Assembly (NCBI GenBank): GCA_024704765.1 | Contig: JAKMXF010000021.1 | Span: 25,637 to 89,636 of the forward strand | Length of the DNA stretch: 64,000 bases | Source: Oopsacas minuta | Taxonomy: Eukaryota; Animalia; Porifera | Direction: 5' to 3' | Shown: positions 7,160 through 17,240 of the stretch, piece after piece | Position numbering within the stretch: the stretch's first letter is position 1 | Layout: each line of letters opens with the position of its first letter | The notes under the pieces: generated by a model | Database searches by the model: none | What the model was told of the DNA's origin: nothing | What the model saw: only the letters and a program-made list of their open reading frames with translations | Translations under genes and position numbers: made by a program

Positions 7160-7876
7160 TATTTGTATGTCCACAATTATTTGAAGAAACTAGAAGATTC
7201 TTTGAGCTGACATCTGGGACACAGTGGTATTTTTGGCCCTGCTGAAATAATTCGAGTCTTGGACGACAATTCACAAATTCTATGCAATTATGACGTTACC
7301 TATCAAGTATTTGGATACCCGAAAATCGAATTAATTGCTACTGCTCAGCAAATATACATAATAGAAGTTCTTAGAAACAGGCAGCCCACATTGGGACAAA
7401 TGTCATGATGTCATGATTACGATTTAAAACTAACTCACAATGGGATTATAGGTCATCATGACTGTAAATAAATCAGATTTATAAATATTTCGATATTTTA
7501 TGGTAATTTCAGAATAACCGAGACAGGAACTGTCCAGAATACTAACCAAAAGTGACCTAGCAGCTCCAGTTTTAACACAGAAAGTTATTGGATGTAATAT
7601 CGATGGAACAAATCTCTACAATAGTATAAATCCGAGGCAGGAAATGCCGTGGTCATCGCGTAGTGTAGCGACCAAAAGCACTAAAAACTCACCTGTTCAA
7701 TACTTAATCTAACATGAAACGCTAAGCTGTCGCACAGTGACCTAGCAAGTGGAGCGGGCTAGTATAAATTATTTGTATTTATTAAAGAGATATTAATCCA
7801 TTATGCAATATTGTAGGTGGGGATAAGAGAATATTTTATAGGGGTCATTCTATAGTATAAGATCAGCCAACAGGTG

Positions 7877-10800
7877 CTCAGTGGTTTAGGAGCAAAGAAT
7901 AGACAAAAAATTAATCCGTAGTTGATGGTTTTATTTCATTTTATATTGTTTAATGATTCTCATTTAAATATCTAAGCGATTGAGACCCTAGAAGCTGTAA
8001 AATTTCTTCATCAAAGATGCGAAATATTTCTAGGAAAATTGCGGCTTCATGATTTCTAAATTCAGCCCGAATTTCAAATGAACCTGTAAGAGCAATTACA
8101 TAATCGAATGTTACTGATCTGGTATACTTTATACATTTCGACTATGCTAATTCTAAATATCTTGTTTCCATGACTGTATCTTGTATATATTTCGCGAACA
8201 TAAGATGTCTAAAATCTAGTAAATCCGTACAGAATTGTTACAAAGAGGAATACTTAAAGTGTCAGGAAAAATAAACACCACAAAACAACAGCACAAAATA
8301 AAGTGGATGCACGCATTACGATTCCTAAAAACATAATCTAAAACCACAAAACCCGAAACAGTGCGCAACATATAATTTTCAATAACATTCCATTACAACT
8401 TTTCATTGGAGGAAATTCCCATTGTAGCATACTCCAACAATGGAATGAAATAGTATTGAATTTCGTTCTTAAAATTTATTATAGTGAGTTATATATATAA
8501 TCTACAGAATAATACAACATATTTTTCGGAAGTTCTTGAAAACAATGATAGAAGAGTTAACTTGCCCAAAGTCACGCCTTGAATTGGCAAGAATCCTGAA
8601 AGACAATAATAATTGTGACTTGAAAACGGCAAAATTTTGCAAAGAACAATTTGAAATACACTCAGATAATACGAAACTCTTGGGAACGTTGCCGTTAAGA
8701 ATTCGGGAGAGATTCAAGAAGGCGAAGAGATCTTTAGATTGTTTAGAAGGAGAATGTTGGCATTCTAACATTTCCATGAAACATGAGTTACAGAAAATTC
8801 GTAGTTCTGATTTACTAGATTCGTCTTCTGATGATGGTGAAGTTCCCATTCATTCAGTGAGACATAGGCAGAATCTTGATGGTCTCTCTCTGCAGCAACA
8901 ACGTACTCGATTGTCAAGTCTGCTAGACTGCATTAAGCCACTCTCAGTTATTGAGAATATTGCAGAAATAAGCATTGCAGCAATCTCATTACAACTATTA
9001 GCAAATGAGGAGAATAATCGTCAGGTTGCAACGGTAGCCAAAGAGATTATTGTCAGTGGAGGATTCTGTAACCGCAGTAACAAGCATGTTCCAGTTGACA
9101 AAGCCGTATTCCTGCTGGATTTAATTGAAGTGGGCAGACGAAAATACACTCAACTACGACAAACACTTCTACCAGACAATATGCATTTTCCATCATACAG
9201 CAAGTTAGCTATTCTGAGAGATGTCATGATTTCACGATCCAGTATAACTTTATACCCTAATCCAACTAAACCAAAATGTATACACGCACCATATTGTCTT
9301 CAAGTTCAGAAAACCCTAGAAAGAATATTGTCAATGGTAGATCGCCCCACAAGTGGGGAATTCACACTCACATTCAAAATCGCAGATGGCTTAGATGGTT
9401 CTGGTTGTCACACTATCTACAACCAGCAGGCAACTAATACTTTTACCAAAACTTCATTCTGTTTTGTTTCGAGCCCATCTCCATCTCCACTGTAACAAAC
9501 AGGATTGTTTGGCAGAATAAATCCCCTAATTAACCCCTCTCTCAAAGACCTATTTTTCTCTGCGCTGCGACAGAATGCGAAGAAAATATTCGTTCCTTCA
9601 TGGAAACTATGATTAATCCCGATATAGCGATGTTACAAAATGGGATTCCTTTAGAAAATGGCGTTGTCAATGTCGATATTATCCACTCAATGTTTGATGA
9701 GAAGATGGCAGCCATTCTCTCTGGAGCTGGAGGAGCCAGTTGTCAGATGTGCACTGCCACACATAAAGATTTGAAAGACCGGAATTTAGTTCTTGAAGGG
9801 TTCCCCATCAACAGAAATATCACAGATGCAATCGAGTTATTCTCGCACATTGATGACTTTGAGTCGTTCTTTGCTCTTTCTACTAATGAACACTTCAATT
9901 TAACTCATCAAACAATTTCAGAGATTAACATACATCCAGCATCTCCACTTCATTCATACACAGGCGATTTGGGTAAGTGATCTGGTACTCAATTAACCAT
10001 TCAGAAATTATCTTTACATAATTAAACAAATTTTAGGTGGTTCAATTTGTTGGTATATCATCTTCGCATCAAAAAGTTTACCTGTTCGCCAATTTCACCA
10101 GTTATCAAGGAGTCAATGAAATTTCTTCAAACACTTATTCAGGCGAAGACAGGATTAAAGGTTGACCAGCCTAATTTTTAGCGGTGGAACCATCTCAACA
10201 GGGAATGTTGCTAGAAGAGCCTTTTCTGATGAAACTGAATACCTTGATTGCATTCTATCATCTGTAGCAATACAATATTGCCCAATCTTATCAAAGATAC
10301 ATACTCAGTTTTCAGCAATTCTTCGGGTTTTCAATTCAAGTCACAAAGTTAACACTTTAGAATTGGGGAAATTGTGCAAGGATATCTACCTTGTAATCTT
10401 AGATTCTTTCCCCTGGATTAGCATGACTCCAACCCTGCATAAGCTCTTGGCCCATTCCGAGGAGTTAACACGCGAGTCGAATTCTAGCTATGGCTTAAAG
10501 GCATTTTCAGAAGAAGTCACATAATCATGTAACAAATTAATTAGAAAATATGGGGAGAATTTAGCTCGTAAAGTTAGTTTTGAGGCCAATATTATGGATA
10601 TCTTCGTCAGATTAACCTCTCAAAGTGATCCAAACTTAGTAAACTATCGAAGACTTTGACTTGTGAACGATGTGGTCAATCTGGACACACAACGAAATCT
10701 AAATGCTGCAATGCTATGAACAATCAGAAAACTAGTATACAGACTTTATTCACGACTTTAACCTCCAGTACAGATTGCCTATCATGAACTTAAGTATGAA

Positions 10801-11180
10801 TATAATGTATATTTTGTAAATCAATAAGATAAATTCCACCATATGTGTGACGTCATAATTCTGAAGACGCCATAACTCTATAAATACAAGCCCTATAACA
10901 AAATTTTAAGTTCAAGGTGATGGCCAAATACGGATAACCCATATGTAATTAATAGATTTCATATGGCGATAAAGTCGACTAAAATGGATTTATTGAAGAA
11001 AAATTTAAAATTTCACATATATCAATGACGTCATAACTTGGCAGTTTTAAGCCATATACTTGTTATGACAAGATGCATTGGTTCCTTATGTATAATAATC
11101 TATATGTATAAATTCATTTCATATGGCTATCTCACACCAAAATAGCTATTCTCTACTAACTGGCCTATTAAACCACTGTG
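7877..11180 (+). mobile_element. Transib/RAG1-like transposon, full length, 3304 bp
   Basis: Left end CTCAGTGGTTTA (7877) and right end CACAGTGGTTTA on the minus strand (11180). Identical 5-bp TSD AGGTG at 7872-7876 and 11181-11185. Encloses a RAG1/Transib-type transposase. Confidence 0.9.
8536..10787 (+). pseudogene. RAG1-like/Transib transposase, disrupted, with one intron and a C-terminal CCHC tail
   Basis: NBD-like RQNLDGLSLQQQRTRL. First Asp in GLDGSG (9394) and second in MFDEK (9696). CxxC at 9741-9752, SPLH, GTISTGNVARRAF and PTLHKLLAH (10438-10455). FSEEVT*SCNKLIRKY, where the stop at 10522 replaces the catalytic Glu. DIFVRLTSQSDP, then CERCGQSGHTTKSKC. GTAAGT...TTTTAG intron at 9973-10036. 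Confidence 0.88.
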
Positions 11181-11958
11181 AGGTGTAATTGACTTAATCA
11201 AGAATCATTTACAAAGTGCTGAATGCCCAGAAGCAGATATGGTCGAGACTTTAATACGTAAAATATTTACAATATGTAAGTACATAGAATATAGTTGATC
11301 CATAAATTTAATTACTTATTTGGATTGAGAAATCATCTAAGGGAACTGATAAAGGGTACTAAATACTTCTTATCCCATAACCGCAAGATATTGTTAACAG
11401 TTCTCTTAAGATTACTGAAAATTTACGATTAGACTTCTGTATCTCTACTATAAAAAGCAAATAATCTGTAGATATGCATAAATGTATAGTAGGGTGCATC
11501 AGTTACCACATAAATTGAAAACAACACTTGGCTCAGAAGTTTTTATGAAATTCATATACTAAAGAATCATAATGTATAATTTCATTGGACTTCAACAAGA
11601 GTTAAGGGATGCACAATTCAATTATTCCAAAGCACAGGCATTGTAATGGGATTGTGCCGGAATTCAAGTACACTTAACGTAAAGTGTAAATCTGATAGGA
11701 CTGGAAACTACATACCATATGTTAGGTGTATCTAGGATGGTATGTATCTGCTTACAATACAGATTTACAGATAAAGGAAATAATGAGACAGGCCAATAGA
11801 ATCCTATTAGAACATCCAAATTCAAACGCCTAATATCTCTAAAACAGTGCAACAATGGCGATCAAATGCATTATTAGTAGAAACAAACAACTCAAATTGC
11901 TCAAATATAAGCTGAAACACAGTAGACATATACGAAGTACACTTATCGGAAACCATTC

Positions 11959-16428: not shown

Positions 16429-16854
16429 CACCAGCCCAAATTTAACAGAATTCTAGGGACGTGAAATAACGCGACGGTCATCATTTTAAAAATTCTATCT
16501 GAGCCTCCTGACATTTTTGAAATTTAAATTTTCTAGAAAATTGATTTTTTGTGTTTTCTGATAATACATTACAGCAACAATGAATAACACAGAGAAGCTT
16601 TCGATTTTCTCAGCTCCCAAACTCCAGTTAGAGCGGCAAGTGATCAATTTATGTAGTCTTTCCAATTTCAAGAGAGCGATATTTACTGACTAAGGAGGAA
16701 ATTCGGAGCCCTTAAGTCTGACAGACATGCCCTCCAAAAGAACAAGGACTTAGTATCTTCGAAAGAGATACGATTTCATTCCTTGGAAATTGATTGTGCT
16801 CTGAAAAAGAGAATTTCCAATGATCGTGTAATAATTGAGCTGATTTATCCACTA

Positions 16855-17240
16855 AAATAAGTAAACCTCTATCTCAATTAAATACCAAGGGATTAAAAGT
16901 CAGATTAGCTCCTTTGCTAAACCACCACATAGAAATAATTGCCAGAAGAGAAGAAGTTGATAGAAAAACCTACGCTTCTCTAGCTCTACAGTTTGTATCT
17001 AACCTGACACATCACCATAAAACGTTCTATTTGCAAAGAAATCATTTCGTAAGGGTCTTTTGACAATGCAAACAAATACATACCTATTAAGAAATGAATA
17101 TTTCTCATTGACAAACTTGAAATGGGAAAACGAAAGTACATTGATCTCAAAAGAACTTTGAAATCGGAGAATGTTACTTCCCGTCCAACAAAGATGTGGC
17201 TCAATATCGATCTGAAATACGTTCAGTAATGAATTACAGT
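16855..17240 (+). pseudogene. Second, divergent Transib/RAG1-like transposase fragment (NBD/DDBD-like region)
   Basis: KPLSQLNTKGLKVRLAPLL...ASLALQFVSN then KEIIS*GSFDNANKYIPIKK*IFLIDKLEMGKRKYIDLKRTL aligns colinearly by eye with the 8536 protein (KEIIVSGGFCNRSNKHVPVDKAVFLLDLIEVGRRKYTQLRQTL). Confidence 0.72.

Follow-up and report, generated by a model that had tools for sequence, protein, structure and literature searches.

Does the transposon-like locus at positions 7872-11185 of the stretch of Oopsacas minuta DNA studied here (64,000 nucleotides of contig JAKMXF010000021.1, assembly GCA_024704765.1; hereafter the window, to which all positions refer) belong to the lineage of the RAG1-like (RAG1L) genes or to the Transib transposons? 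An earlier note, made from the letters of the window only, had described a complete RAG1-like/Transib element and placed it nearer to RAG1L than to Transib. Our analysis leads to the other side: with a probability of roughly 85%, the locus is one degenerate copy of a single-gene, multi-copy transposon of the Transib superfamily in this hexactinellid sponge, of the Subgroup I type, on the Transib side by sequence, and devoid of a RAG2-like (RAG2L) gene.

The placement starts from profile and sequence searches against all solved structures, for which four independent queries were used. The profile of the sponge family (A3) matches HzTransib with 103.8 bits (E 7.5e-29), BbRAG1L with 45.3 bits (3.9e-11), and RAG1 with about 40 bits (1e-9). 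The corresponding scores are 162.5, 100.7, and 54 bits with a profile of the C-terminal half (A5); 267, 211, and 147 bits with a profile of the wider clade (A2); and 83, 42, and 22 bits with the intact relative P0234. The order HzTransib, BbRAG1L, RAG1 is the same in all four. The alignment to solved structures that the earlier note had proposed as a check is therefore obtained, but the ranking runs against its placement: in sequence, the protein is consistently nearer to HzTransib than to amphioxus RAG1L or to RAG1. Searches of Pfam agree, in that intact sponge relatives reach 18-25 bits with the RAG1 family (cut-off 25) and do so only around the Glu motif. An exhaustive protein search yielded 1,891 relatives, and among the best 150 of these none of the 35 members scanned had a RAG1-like Pfam score. 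The window's own translated pieces gave nothing in Pfam except for a weak zinc-knuckle match (zf-CCHC), and submitted singly to the PDB they gave a marginal match to HzTransib only. A homologue search with the diverse alignment A2 returned krill-type relatives of its first sequence only.

These scores bear directly on the possibility that the element is a RAGL transposon from which RAG2L was lost, and is closer to RAG1 than any Transib is. We hold this to be quite unlikely, given that HzTransib scores about two-fold above BbRAG1L across the four queries and that the Pfam RAG1 matches are marginal. A search of a language-model atlas does favour it, since clusters of vertebrate RAG1 fragments were listed first; the atlas, however, contains large clusters only, so that vertebrate RAG1 fragments dominate. 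Further support comes from the architecture and the fold of the protein, to which we turn now.

AlphaFold2 models were made of the relative P0016 (pLDDT 88.4) and of the intact exon-2 product of L002, another copy in the O. minuta assembly (pLDDT 83.8), and superposed on RAG1, HzTransib, and BbRAGL as the earlier note had recommended, giving Z scores of 12.7-21 over both halves. In the C-terminal half, HzTransib leads (Z 15.3), followed by RAG1 (13) and BbRAGL (12.7). In the N-terminal half RAG1 leads with Z 21 (model residues 91-503 on RAG1 391-842), and HzTransib and BbRAGL follow with 18.1 and 17.2; 324-330 residues of RAG1 are superposed on the P0016 model against 290 of HzTransib. The higher N-terminal score for RAG1 arises because it has extra modules in common with the sponge protein: the alignment of full RAG1 chains starts at model residue 91, that of HzTransib and BbRAGL only at residue 166. 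The first of these modules is the NBD-like segment announced by the earlier note, which is real: it aligns by profile to RAG1 362-445, and model residues 91-157 fall on the RAG1 NBD (3GNA) with Z 6.8 at 2.8 Å over 67 of 68 residues. The second is an insert in ZnC2, the counterpart of the alpha11-alpha12 region through which RAG1 binds RAG2. The second cysteine of ZnC2 and the histidine of the LH motif are spaced by 67 amino acids in the sponge protein and by 62-79 in 43 of 45 relatives; the insert aligns without gaps to BbRAG1L, and about 40 amino acids are missing there from HzTransib (241 to 253 across some 48 profile positions). The third is the C-terminal tail CERCGQSGHTTKSKC, read CX2CX3GHX5C, which makes the CCHC tail of the earlier note a CCGHC-type zinc knuckle, conserved in the family and in the wider clade. 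The catalytic D, D, and E, the CxxC, and the H..L.H motif are likewise conserved in the sponge family.

The NBD-like domain, the ZnC2 insert, the CCGHC tail (all common with RAG1L), and the RAG1-led Z score of the N-terminal half are thus what a RAGL origin has to offer. These common modules, however, are reported as ancestral and occur in Transibs too (Tao et al. 2022, PMC9435367; Martin et al. 2023), and other traits that would be expected of a RAGL element are missing: it contains no RAG2L, and no RING or zinc-finger N-terminus is detectable. Of the features that the earlier note had taken as signs of RAG1L affinity, none serves that purpose. Its MFDEK motif is private to the window copy, where a GGG>GAG change (G>A at 9700) altered the M.DGK of the family and of the wider clade. 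The E..NK of its S(C)NKL motif and the CCGHC tail are found throughout the clade, krill included. The N-terminal extension, too, is long throughout the clade; it consists of a three-helix bundle at model residues 10-59 (pLDDT about 95; window about 8570-8725), followed by a disordered linker, and the bundle has weak helix-turn-helix-like matches only (Mos1 N-terminus, Z 4.0; POU domain, Z 3.6). No Pfam match to a RAG1-type N-terminal region (cysteine pairs, RING, zinc finger) was found on this part of the protein. The intron, discussed below, was recently gained.

The same modules decide against the converse possibility, that the element is an ordinary compact Transib of the HzTransib type (Subgroup II) whose RAG1-like extras were over-read. 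HzTransib is indeed the top sequence match in every search. Yet it aligns from model residue 166 only and so has no counterpart of the NBD-like domain, it is without the ~40 amino acids between ZnC2 and the LH histidine, and it carries no cysteine at the positions aligned to the CCGHC tail; in addition, the ends of the sponge element are asymmetric. We consider this alternative very unlikely.

A few observations weigh against assigning the element to the Transib side and to Subgroup I. Bit-score rankings and domain content, rather than a phylogeny, are what the Transib-side placement draws upon. The N-terminal half has a somewhat higher Z score for RAG1 (21) than for HzTransib (18). The NBD-like domain is a small helical one, for which a Z of 6.8 is, taken alone, only moderate, and it is without the GRPR/K motif: the family has VRHRQ, SHRKH, VRKPL, AKKNL, or RRKPL at this place, all basic. 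Finally, the zinc knuckle is one residue longer than the canonical CX2CX3GHX4C.

The element proper covers 7877-11180 (3,304 bp) and extends to 7872-11185 when the flanking duplications are included. Direct reading gives AGGTG at 7872-7876 and an identical AGGTG at 11181-11185, so the perfect 5-bp duplication of the target site (TSD) that the earlier note reported stands. Apart from one mismatch, the ends are inverted repeats of each other over 12 nt: the 5' terminal inverted repeat (TIR) CTCAGTGGTTTA at 7877-7888 on the plus strand, with its heptamer at 7877-7883, and the 3' TIR TAAACCACTGTG at 11169-11180 on the minus strand, with its heptamer at 11174-11180. Both termini follow the family consensus CACAGTGGTTTA, the 3' end as its reverse complement, in all full-length copies. 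The heptamers of the recombination signal sequence (RSS) that the earlier note saw at the ends accordingly hold for the family termini, which read CACAGTG, but not entirely for the window copy, whose own 5' heptamer is CTCAGTG. As every other copy has CACAGTG, this A>T at position 2 is a private change.

Further inward the element is asymmetric. At 7896-7911 (plus strand) lie the 5' subterminal boxes, the first of which, AGAATAG, stands 12 nt past the heptamer; its reverse complement CTATTCT (11146-11152) lies 21 nt from the 3' heptamer. In three more distant elements (L003, L004, and L006) the inner box has another sequence that nevertheless co-varies between both ends, with the 3' offset larger by 9 or 10 nt. 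Directly after AGAATAG, and 19 nt past the 5' heptamer, follows an A-rich box, ACAAAAAAT (7903-7911), which has been kept by five of six elements belonging to three diverged families; at the 3' end of the element, no equivalent box with this orientation was observed. It matches the RSS nonamer ACAAAAACC at 7 of 9 positions. The 5' boxes are part of a 5' non-coding region (7889-8544, plus strand) that contains no open reading frame (ORF) of the family and aligns with the other copies. The 3' non-coding region (10788-11168, plus strand) contains, besides CTATTCT, two boxes of each of two kinds: TGACGTCATAA, a CRE-like palindrome, at 10841-10858 and 11019-11036, and ATTTCATATGGC at 10948-10970 and 11108-11130. 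The paired copies of either kind lie 160-178 bp apart, and these doubled boxes may serve as subterminal sites of binding or may stem from a duplication that has diverged.

The recurrence of the ends and of the TSD in further copies, by which the earlier note had proposed to judge its reading, was borne out within the assembly and beyond it. Four more full-length copies in GCA_024704765.1 align end to end with the window element at about 91-95% identity and have the same terminal bases: L001 (92.7%; TSD TAACA), L007 (91%; TAATA), L008 (92%; TAGAT), and L002 (94.6%), the TSD of which is ambiguous, as AAGAC is valid only if its 3' end lost the final TG. A 5'-truncated copy, L009, aligns as well. 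The more distant L003, L004, and L006, from ENA assemblies, show matching heptamers and perfect TSDs (CGGCT, CAAGA, and AGCCG); L003, L004, L005, and L006 come from ERZ25072740, ERZ20067936, ERZ25766962, and ERZ25072730, in that order, and presumably represent other sponges. Contigs from four sequencing runs span both junctions of the window element; the depth in its interior is at least 10-fold that of the flanks, in keeping with a multi-copy family. No contig of these four runs, all from one sample, skips the element to give the empty AGGTG site that the earlier note had suggested looking for, although a rare allele could escape contigs.

The nearest protein matches are Oopsacas minuta proteins of at most 85% identity, encoded on contigs of the same assembly. 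In a tree that holds only sponge and ENA sequences and wider-clade relatives, the window copy and L002 form a pair (support 100), and this pair lies inside a clade of 29 rows made up of O. minuta and ENA sequences (support 100), separate from the wider clade. ENA contigs hold nearly intact relatives, such as L004 with one frameshift and the proteins P0232, P0234, P0236, and P0238 of 723-725 amino acids; P0234, intact at 724 amino acids, shares 56.6% identity with the window protein. Krill proteins (P0081 and P0223 of Meganyctiphanes norvegica), about 33% identical to the sponge core, also belong to the wider clade that has a long N-terminus and a CCGHC tail, so this architecture is not restricted to early-branching animals.

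Some O. minuta relatives are listed in NCBI and UniRef as named proteins ("Dna-mediated transposase", "V(D)J recombination-activating protein 1"), which might suggest a host gene, i.e. a domesticated RAG1-like recombinase, instead of a transposon copy. Several dispersed copies with TIRs and differing TSDs, all of them broken by differing lesions (six in the window copy), leave this alternative close to no chance.

The transposase gene occupies two broken exons on the plus strand, delimited by reading frames and the family alignment together with the two AlphaFold2 models (P0016 for exon 1, the L002 exon-2 product for exon 2). Exon 1 (8545-9972) encodes, in order, the N-terminal three-helix domain, the NBD-like domain (about 8854-9060), the DDBD, the pre-RNase H region, and the RNase H domain, with the catalytic D codons at 9394-9396 and 9696-9698 and the CQMC of ZnC2 at 9741-9752. 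Exon 2 (10037-10787) encodes ZnH2, the CTD with GNVARRAF, HKLLAH (10438-10455), the dead catalytic codon, and the CCGHC knuckle (10662-10706), and closes with a stop codon at 10785-10787. All protein motifs that the earlier note had listed were found in the order given by three-frame translation, the frame shifting several times.

Those shifts belong to six disabling lesions, all of them private to the window copy. Five were recognized by comparison of frames and copies: a 1-bp deletion at 9447/9448, where the other copies have one more A; a TAA stop at 9531-9533, in place of a Ser of the relatives (SPNSPFSQRP), A9532 being C in the other copies; a 1-bp deletion at 9966/9967, directly 5' of the intron; a 1-bp insertion near 10175-10178; and a 1-bp deletion at 10652/10653, 5' of the zinc knuckle. 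The sixth is the TAA at 10522-10524, exactly where relatives carry the catalytic Glu of SEEGTESCNKL (aligned to SEGNESGNKL of RAG1 and equivalent to RAG1 E962), as the earlier note had proposed with its GAA>TAA. With four frameshifts and two stops, the window copy is dead and unable to make transposase; the note was right on this point and on the Glu codon, but counted one lesion where there are six. Aligned with L001 and L002, the window copy has 132 substitutions of its own (about 4%), where the other two have 34 and 95. Each of the six copies of the subfamily is broken, by differing lesions; no intact one was met among those read (window, L001, L002, L007, L008, and L009), and the window subfamily looks extinct in assembly GCA_024704765.1.

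Within the element, the gene is preceded by 668 bp and followed, after its stop codon, by 393 bp, which leaves no room for a second gene. This confirms the absence of RAG2L that the earlier note had deduced from some 390 bp after the ORF: no second gene and no RAG2L (kelch) was detected inside the element, in which no other ORF exceeds 115 amino acids on either strand and only short antisense ORFs occur.

The two exons are separated by an intron of 64 nt at 9973-10036 (plus strand; GTAAGT...TTTTAG), in phase 2, after the second base of a codon. It is found in all six O. minuta copies, with a length of 56-64 nt, between ...GGCGTATTTAG and GTGGTTC. Its removal yields YTGVFRWFNLL, matching the NCBI gene model P0027, which uses the intron, and one contig of run X4 carries exactly the spliced form. 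This run, with a depth of about 2 in the flanks and of 230-400 in the interior, is, to guess from that profile, probably RNA. The earlier note was thus right that there is an intron, but its use as a sign of RAG1L affinity fails. L003, L004, L005, and L006 continue across the site as unbroken codons, and the intron-bearing pair is nested among them in the tree; for these reasons the intron is a recent gain of this O. minuta subfamily and is not shared with RAG1L genes. Such a clean gain of a 64-nt spliceosomal intron within a transposase gene is of some small interest of its own. The site is AG|GT and is flanked by the near-repeat ATTTAGGT. P0009 was considered as an intact intron-bearing relative and rejected, its ORF stopping at a TGA mutation and not at the intron.

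From these data a working scheme for an intact element can be sketched. The ends, TSDs, copy relatedness, lesions, fold, catalytic and zinc-site positions, domain content, and similarity ranking come from the sponge sequences and models directly; for the cleavage chemistry, the binding of domains to boxes, and the pairing of unlike ends we draw on the structures and biochemistry of HzTransib, BbRAGL, and RAG. An intact element would encode a transposase of about 730 amino acids with the RAG1-core fold. By analogy, each subunit would recognize the CACAGTG heptamer and a second box located 12 bp inward at the 5' end or 21 bp inward at the 3' end; one short end would pair with one long end, and DDE cleavage of the nick-hairpin type would take place at the heptamer. 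The excised element would then be inserted via a 5-bp staggered cut, giving in our case the AGGTG duplication. The CCGHC tail might clamp the inner TIR box, as the CCGHC knuckle does in amphioxus RAG1L (Tao et al. 2022, PMC9435367; Martin et al. 2023).

As to classification, the element shows the hallmarks of the Transib superfamily: a 5-bp TSD, TIRs of the CACAGTG type, a single transposase gene homologous to the RAG1 core, with the C2H2 zinc site and the DDE triad (the Glu codon of which is TAA in the window copy), and no RAG2-like gene. Tao et al. 2022 (PMC9435367) discern two subgroups of Transibs. Subgroup I, characterized by asymmetric TIRs, an equivalent of alpha11-alpha12, and a type-I tail, is considered nearer to RAG1L and a possible intermediate; Subgroup II comprises HzTransib and most elements described earlier. 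The examples given for Subgroup I are MleTransib and PbaTransib of ctenophores, Transib-9_HM of Hydra, and the bacterial CthTransib. The tail known as CTT1 or CTT* is the CCGHC zinc knuckle (Tao et al. 2022, PMC9435367; Martin et al. 2023), and according to Martin et al. 2023, who defined the CCGHC motif, asymmetric TIRs, CCGHC tails, and NBDs all are known in Transibs. The sponge element has all three Subgroup I traits, asymmetric TIRs, the alpha11-alpha12 equivalent, and the type I tail, this being an assignment by traits. The traits of RAGL transposons and RAG1L that are absent are a paired RAG2-like gene, a RAG1-type N-terminus, a sequence nearer to RAG1L or RAG1, and the GRPR/K motif. The "intermediate" of the earlier note therefore is the Subgroup I concept already published (Tao et al. 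2022, PMC9435367), and because its traits coincide with that subgroup the window element is a new sponge family within a known kind of Transib, and no new link to RAG1.

Set beside its relatives, the sponge element agrees with the Subgroup I Transibs in the single gene, 5-bp TSD, asymmetric TIRs, alpha11-alpha12-equivalent insert, CCGHC tail, NBD equivalent, and lack of RAG2L, and differs from them in its poriferan host, a knuckle with GHX5C instead of GHX4C, and the 64-nt intron gained by its subfamily. With HzTransib (Helicoverpa zea, PDB 6PQN), its best sequence match, it has in common the DDE RNase H core, the C2H2 zinc site, the motifs GN.ARRFF, H..L.H, and SE..E..NK, CACAGTG-type ends, and a 5-bp TSD; HzTransib, however, is without some 165 N-terminal residues including the NBD-like domain, without the ~40-amino-acid insert in ZnC2, and without the CCGHC knuckle. 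It resembles BbRAG1L of the amphioxus ProtoRAG (PDB 6B40) and other invertebrate RAG1L in the core fold (Z 17 and 12.7 for the two halves), the ZnC2 insert, the CCGHC tail, an NBD without GRPR/K, asymmetric TIRs, and a 5-bp TSD, but it has neither RAG2L nor a detectable N-terminal RING or zinc finger, and BbRAG1L scores are about half of those of HzTransib. The vertebrate RAG1 core (4WWX, 6CG0; NBD 3GNA) shows the same fold from NBD to CTD and the same positions of the catalytic D, D, and E and of the C2H2 zinc site. It is only 13-16% identical to the sponge protein, however, and RAG1 differs further by an acidic tail in place of the zinc knuckle, the GRPR motif, a long zinc-finger N-terminus, its dependence on RAG2, and its status as a host gene that is not mobile.

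No description of Transibs from sponges was found in the literature searched, and sponges are unmentioned in the supplements of Tao et al. 2022. In the O. minuta genome paper, a RepeatMasker table assigns 1.22% of the genome to "Other (Mirage, P-element, Transib)" without comment. The present family thus extends the host range of the RAG1-like Subgroup I type, published so far from ctenophores, Hydra, and bacteria, to a sponge, and combines in one protein the full set of modules (NBD-like domain, ZnC2 insert, and CCGHC tail) with a 9-bp asymmetry of the ends, providing comparative material for models of the origin of the RAG recombinase and of the 12/23 rule. The gain is incremental, the copy being dead and the concept already published. 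It is tempting to go one step further and to see the hexactinellid Transibs as a vertically inherited, early-branching Subgroup I lineage and, among those alive today, the closest proxy for an ancestor of RAGL transposons that was without RAG2. This wider proposal, which covers at least four O. minuta lineages and many ENA relatives, all with the NBD-like domain, the RAG2-contact insert, the CCGHC tail, and ends of the 12/21 type, we put forward as doubtful. If it were true, naturally intact proteins such as the 724-amino-acid P0234 would be at hand for testing the pairing of unlike ends before RAG2 joined.

Other transposase genes accompany the family. The window contains, at 16842-17181 on the plus strand, a fragment of a second, diverged gene of the Transib type, the protein of which shares 45-52% identity with P0041 and P0016 in their NBD/DDBD part. 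Another Transib-type gene model, of 467 amino acids and with a RAG1_RNase_H match, lies at L007:7855-9258 on the minus strand, about 1 kb from the L007 copy. Transposase genes of other superfamilies adjoin several copies: pogo/Tc5-type at L001, hAT-type at L004, and DDE_3 at L008.

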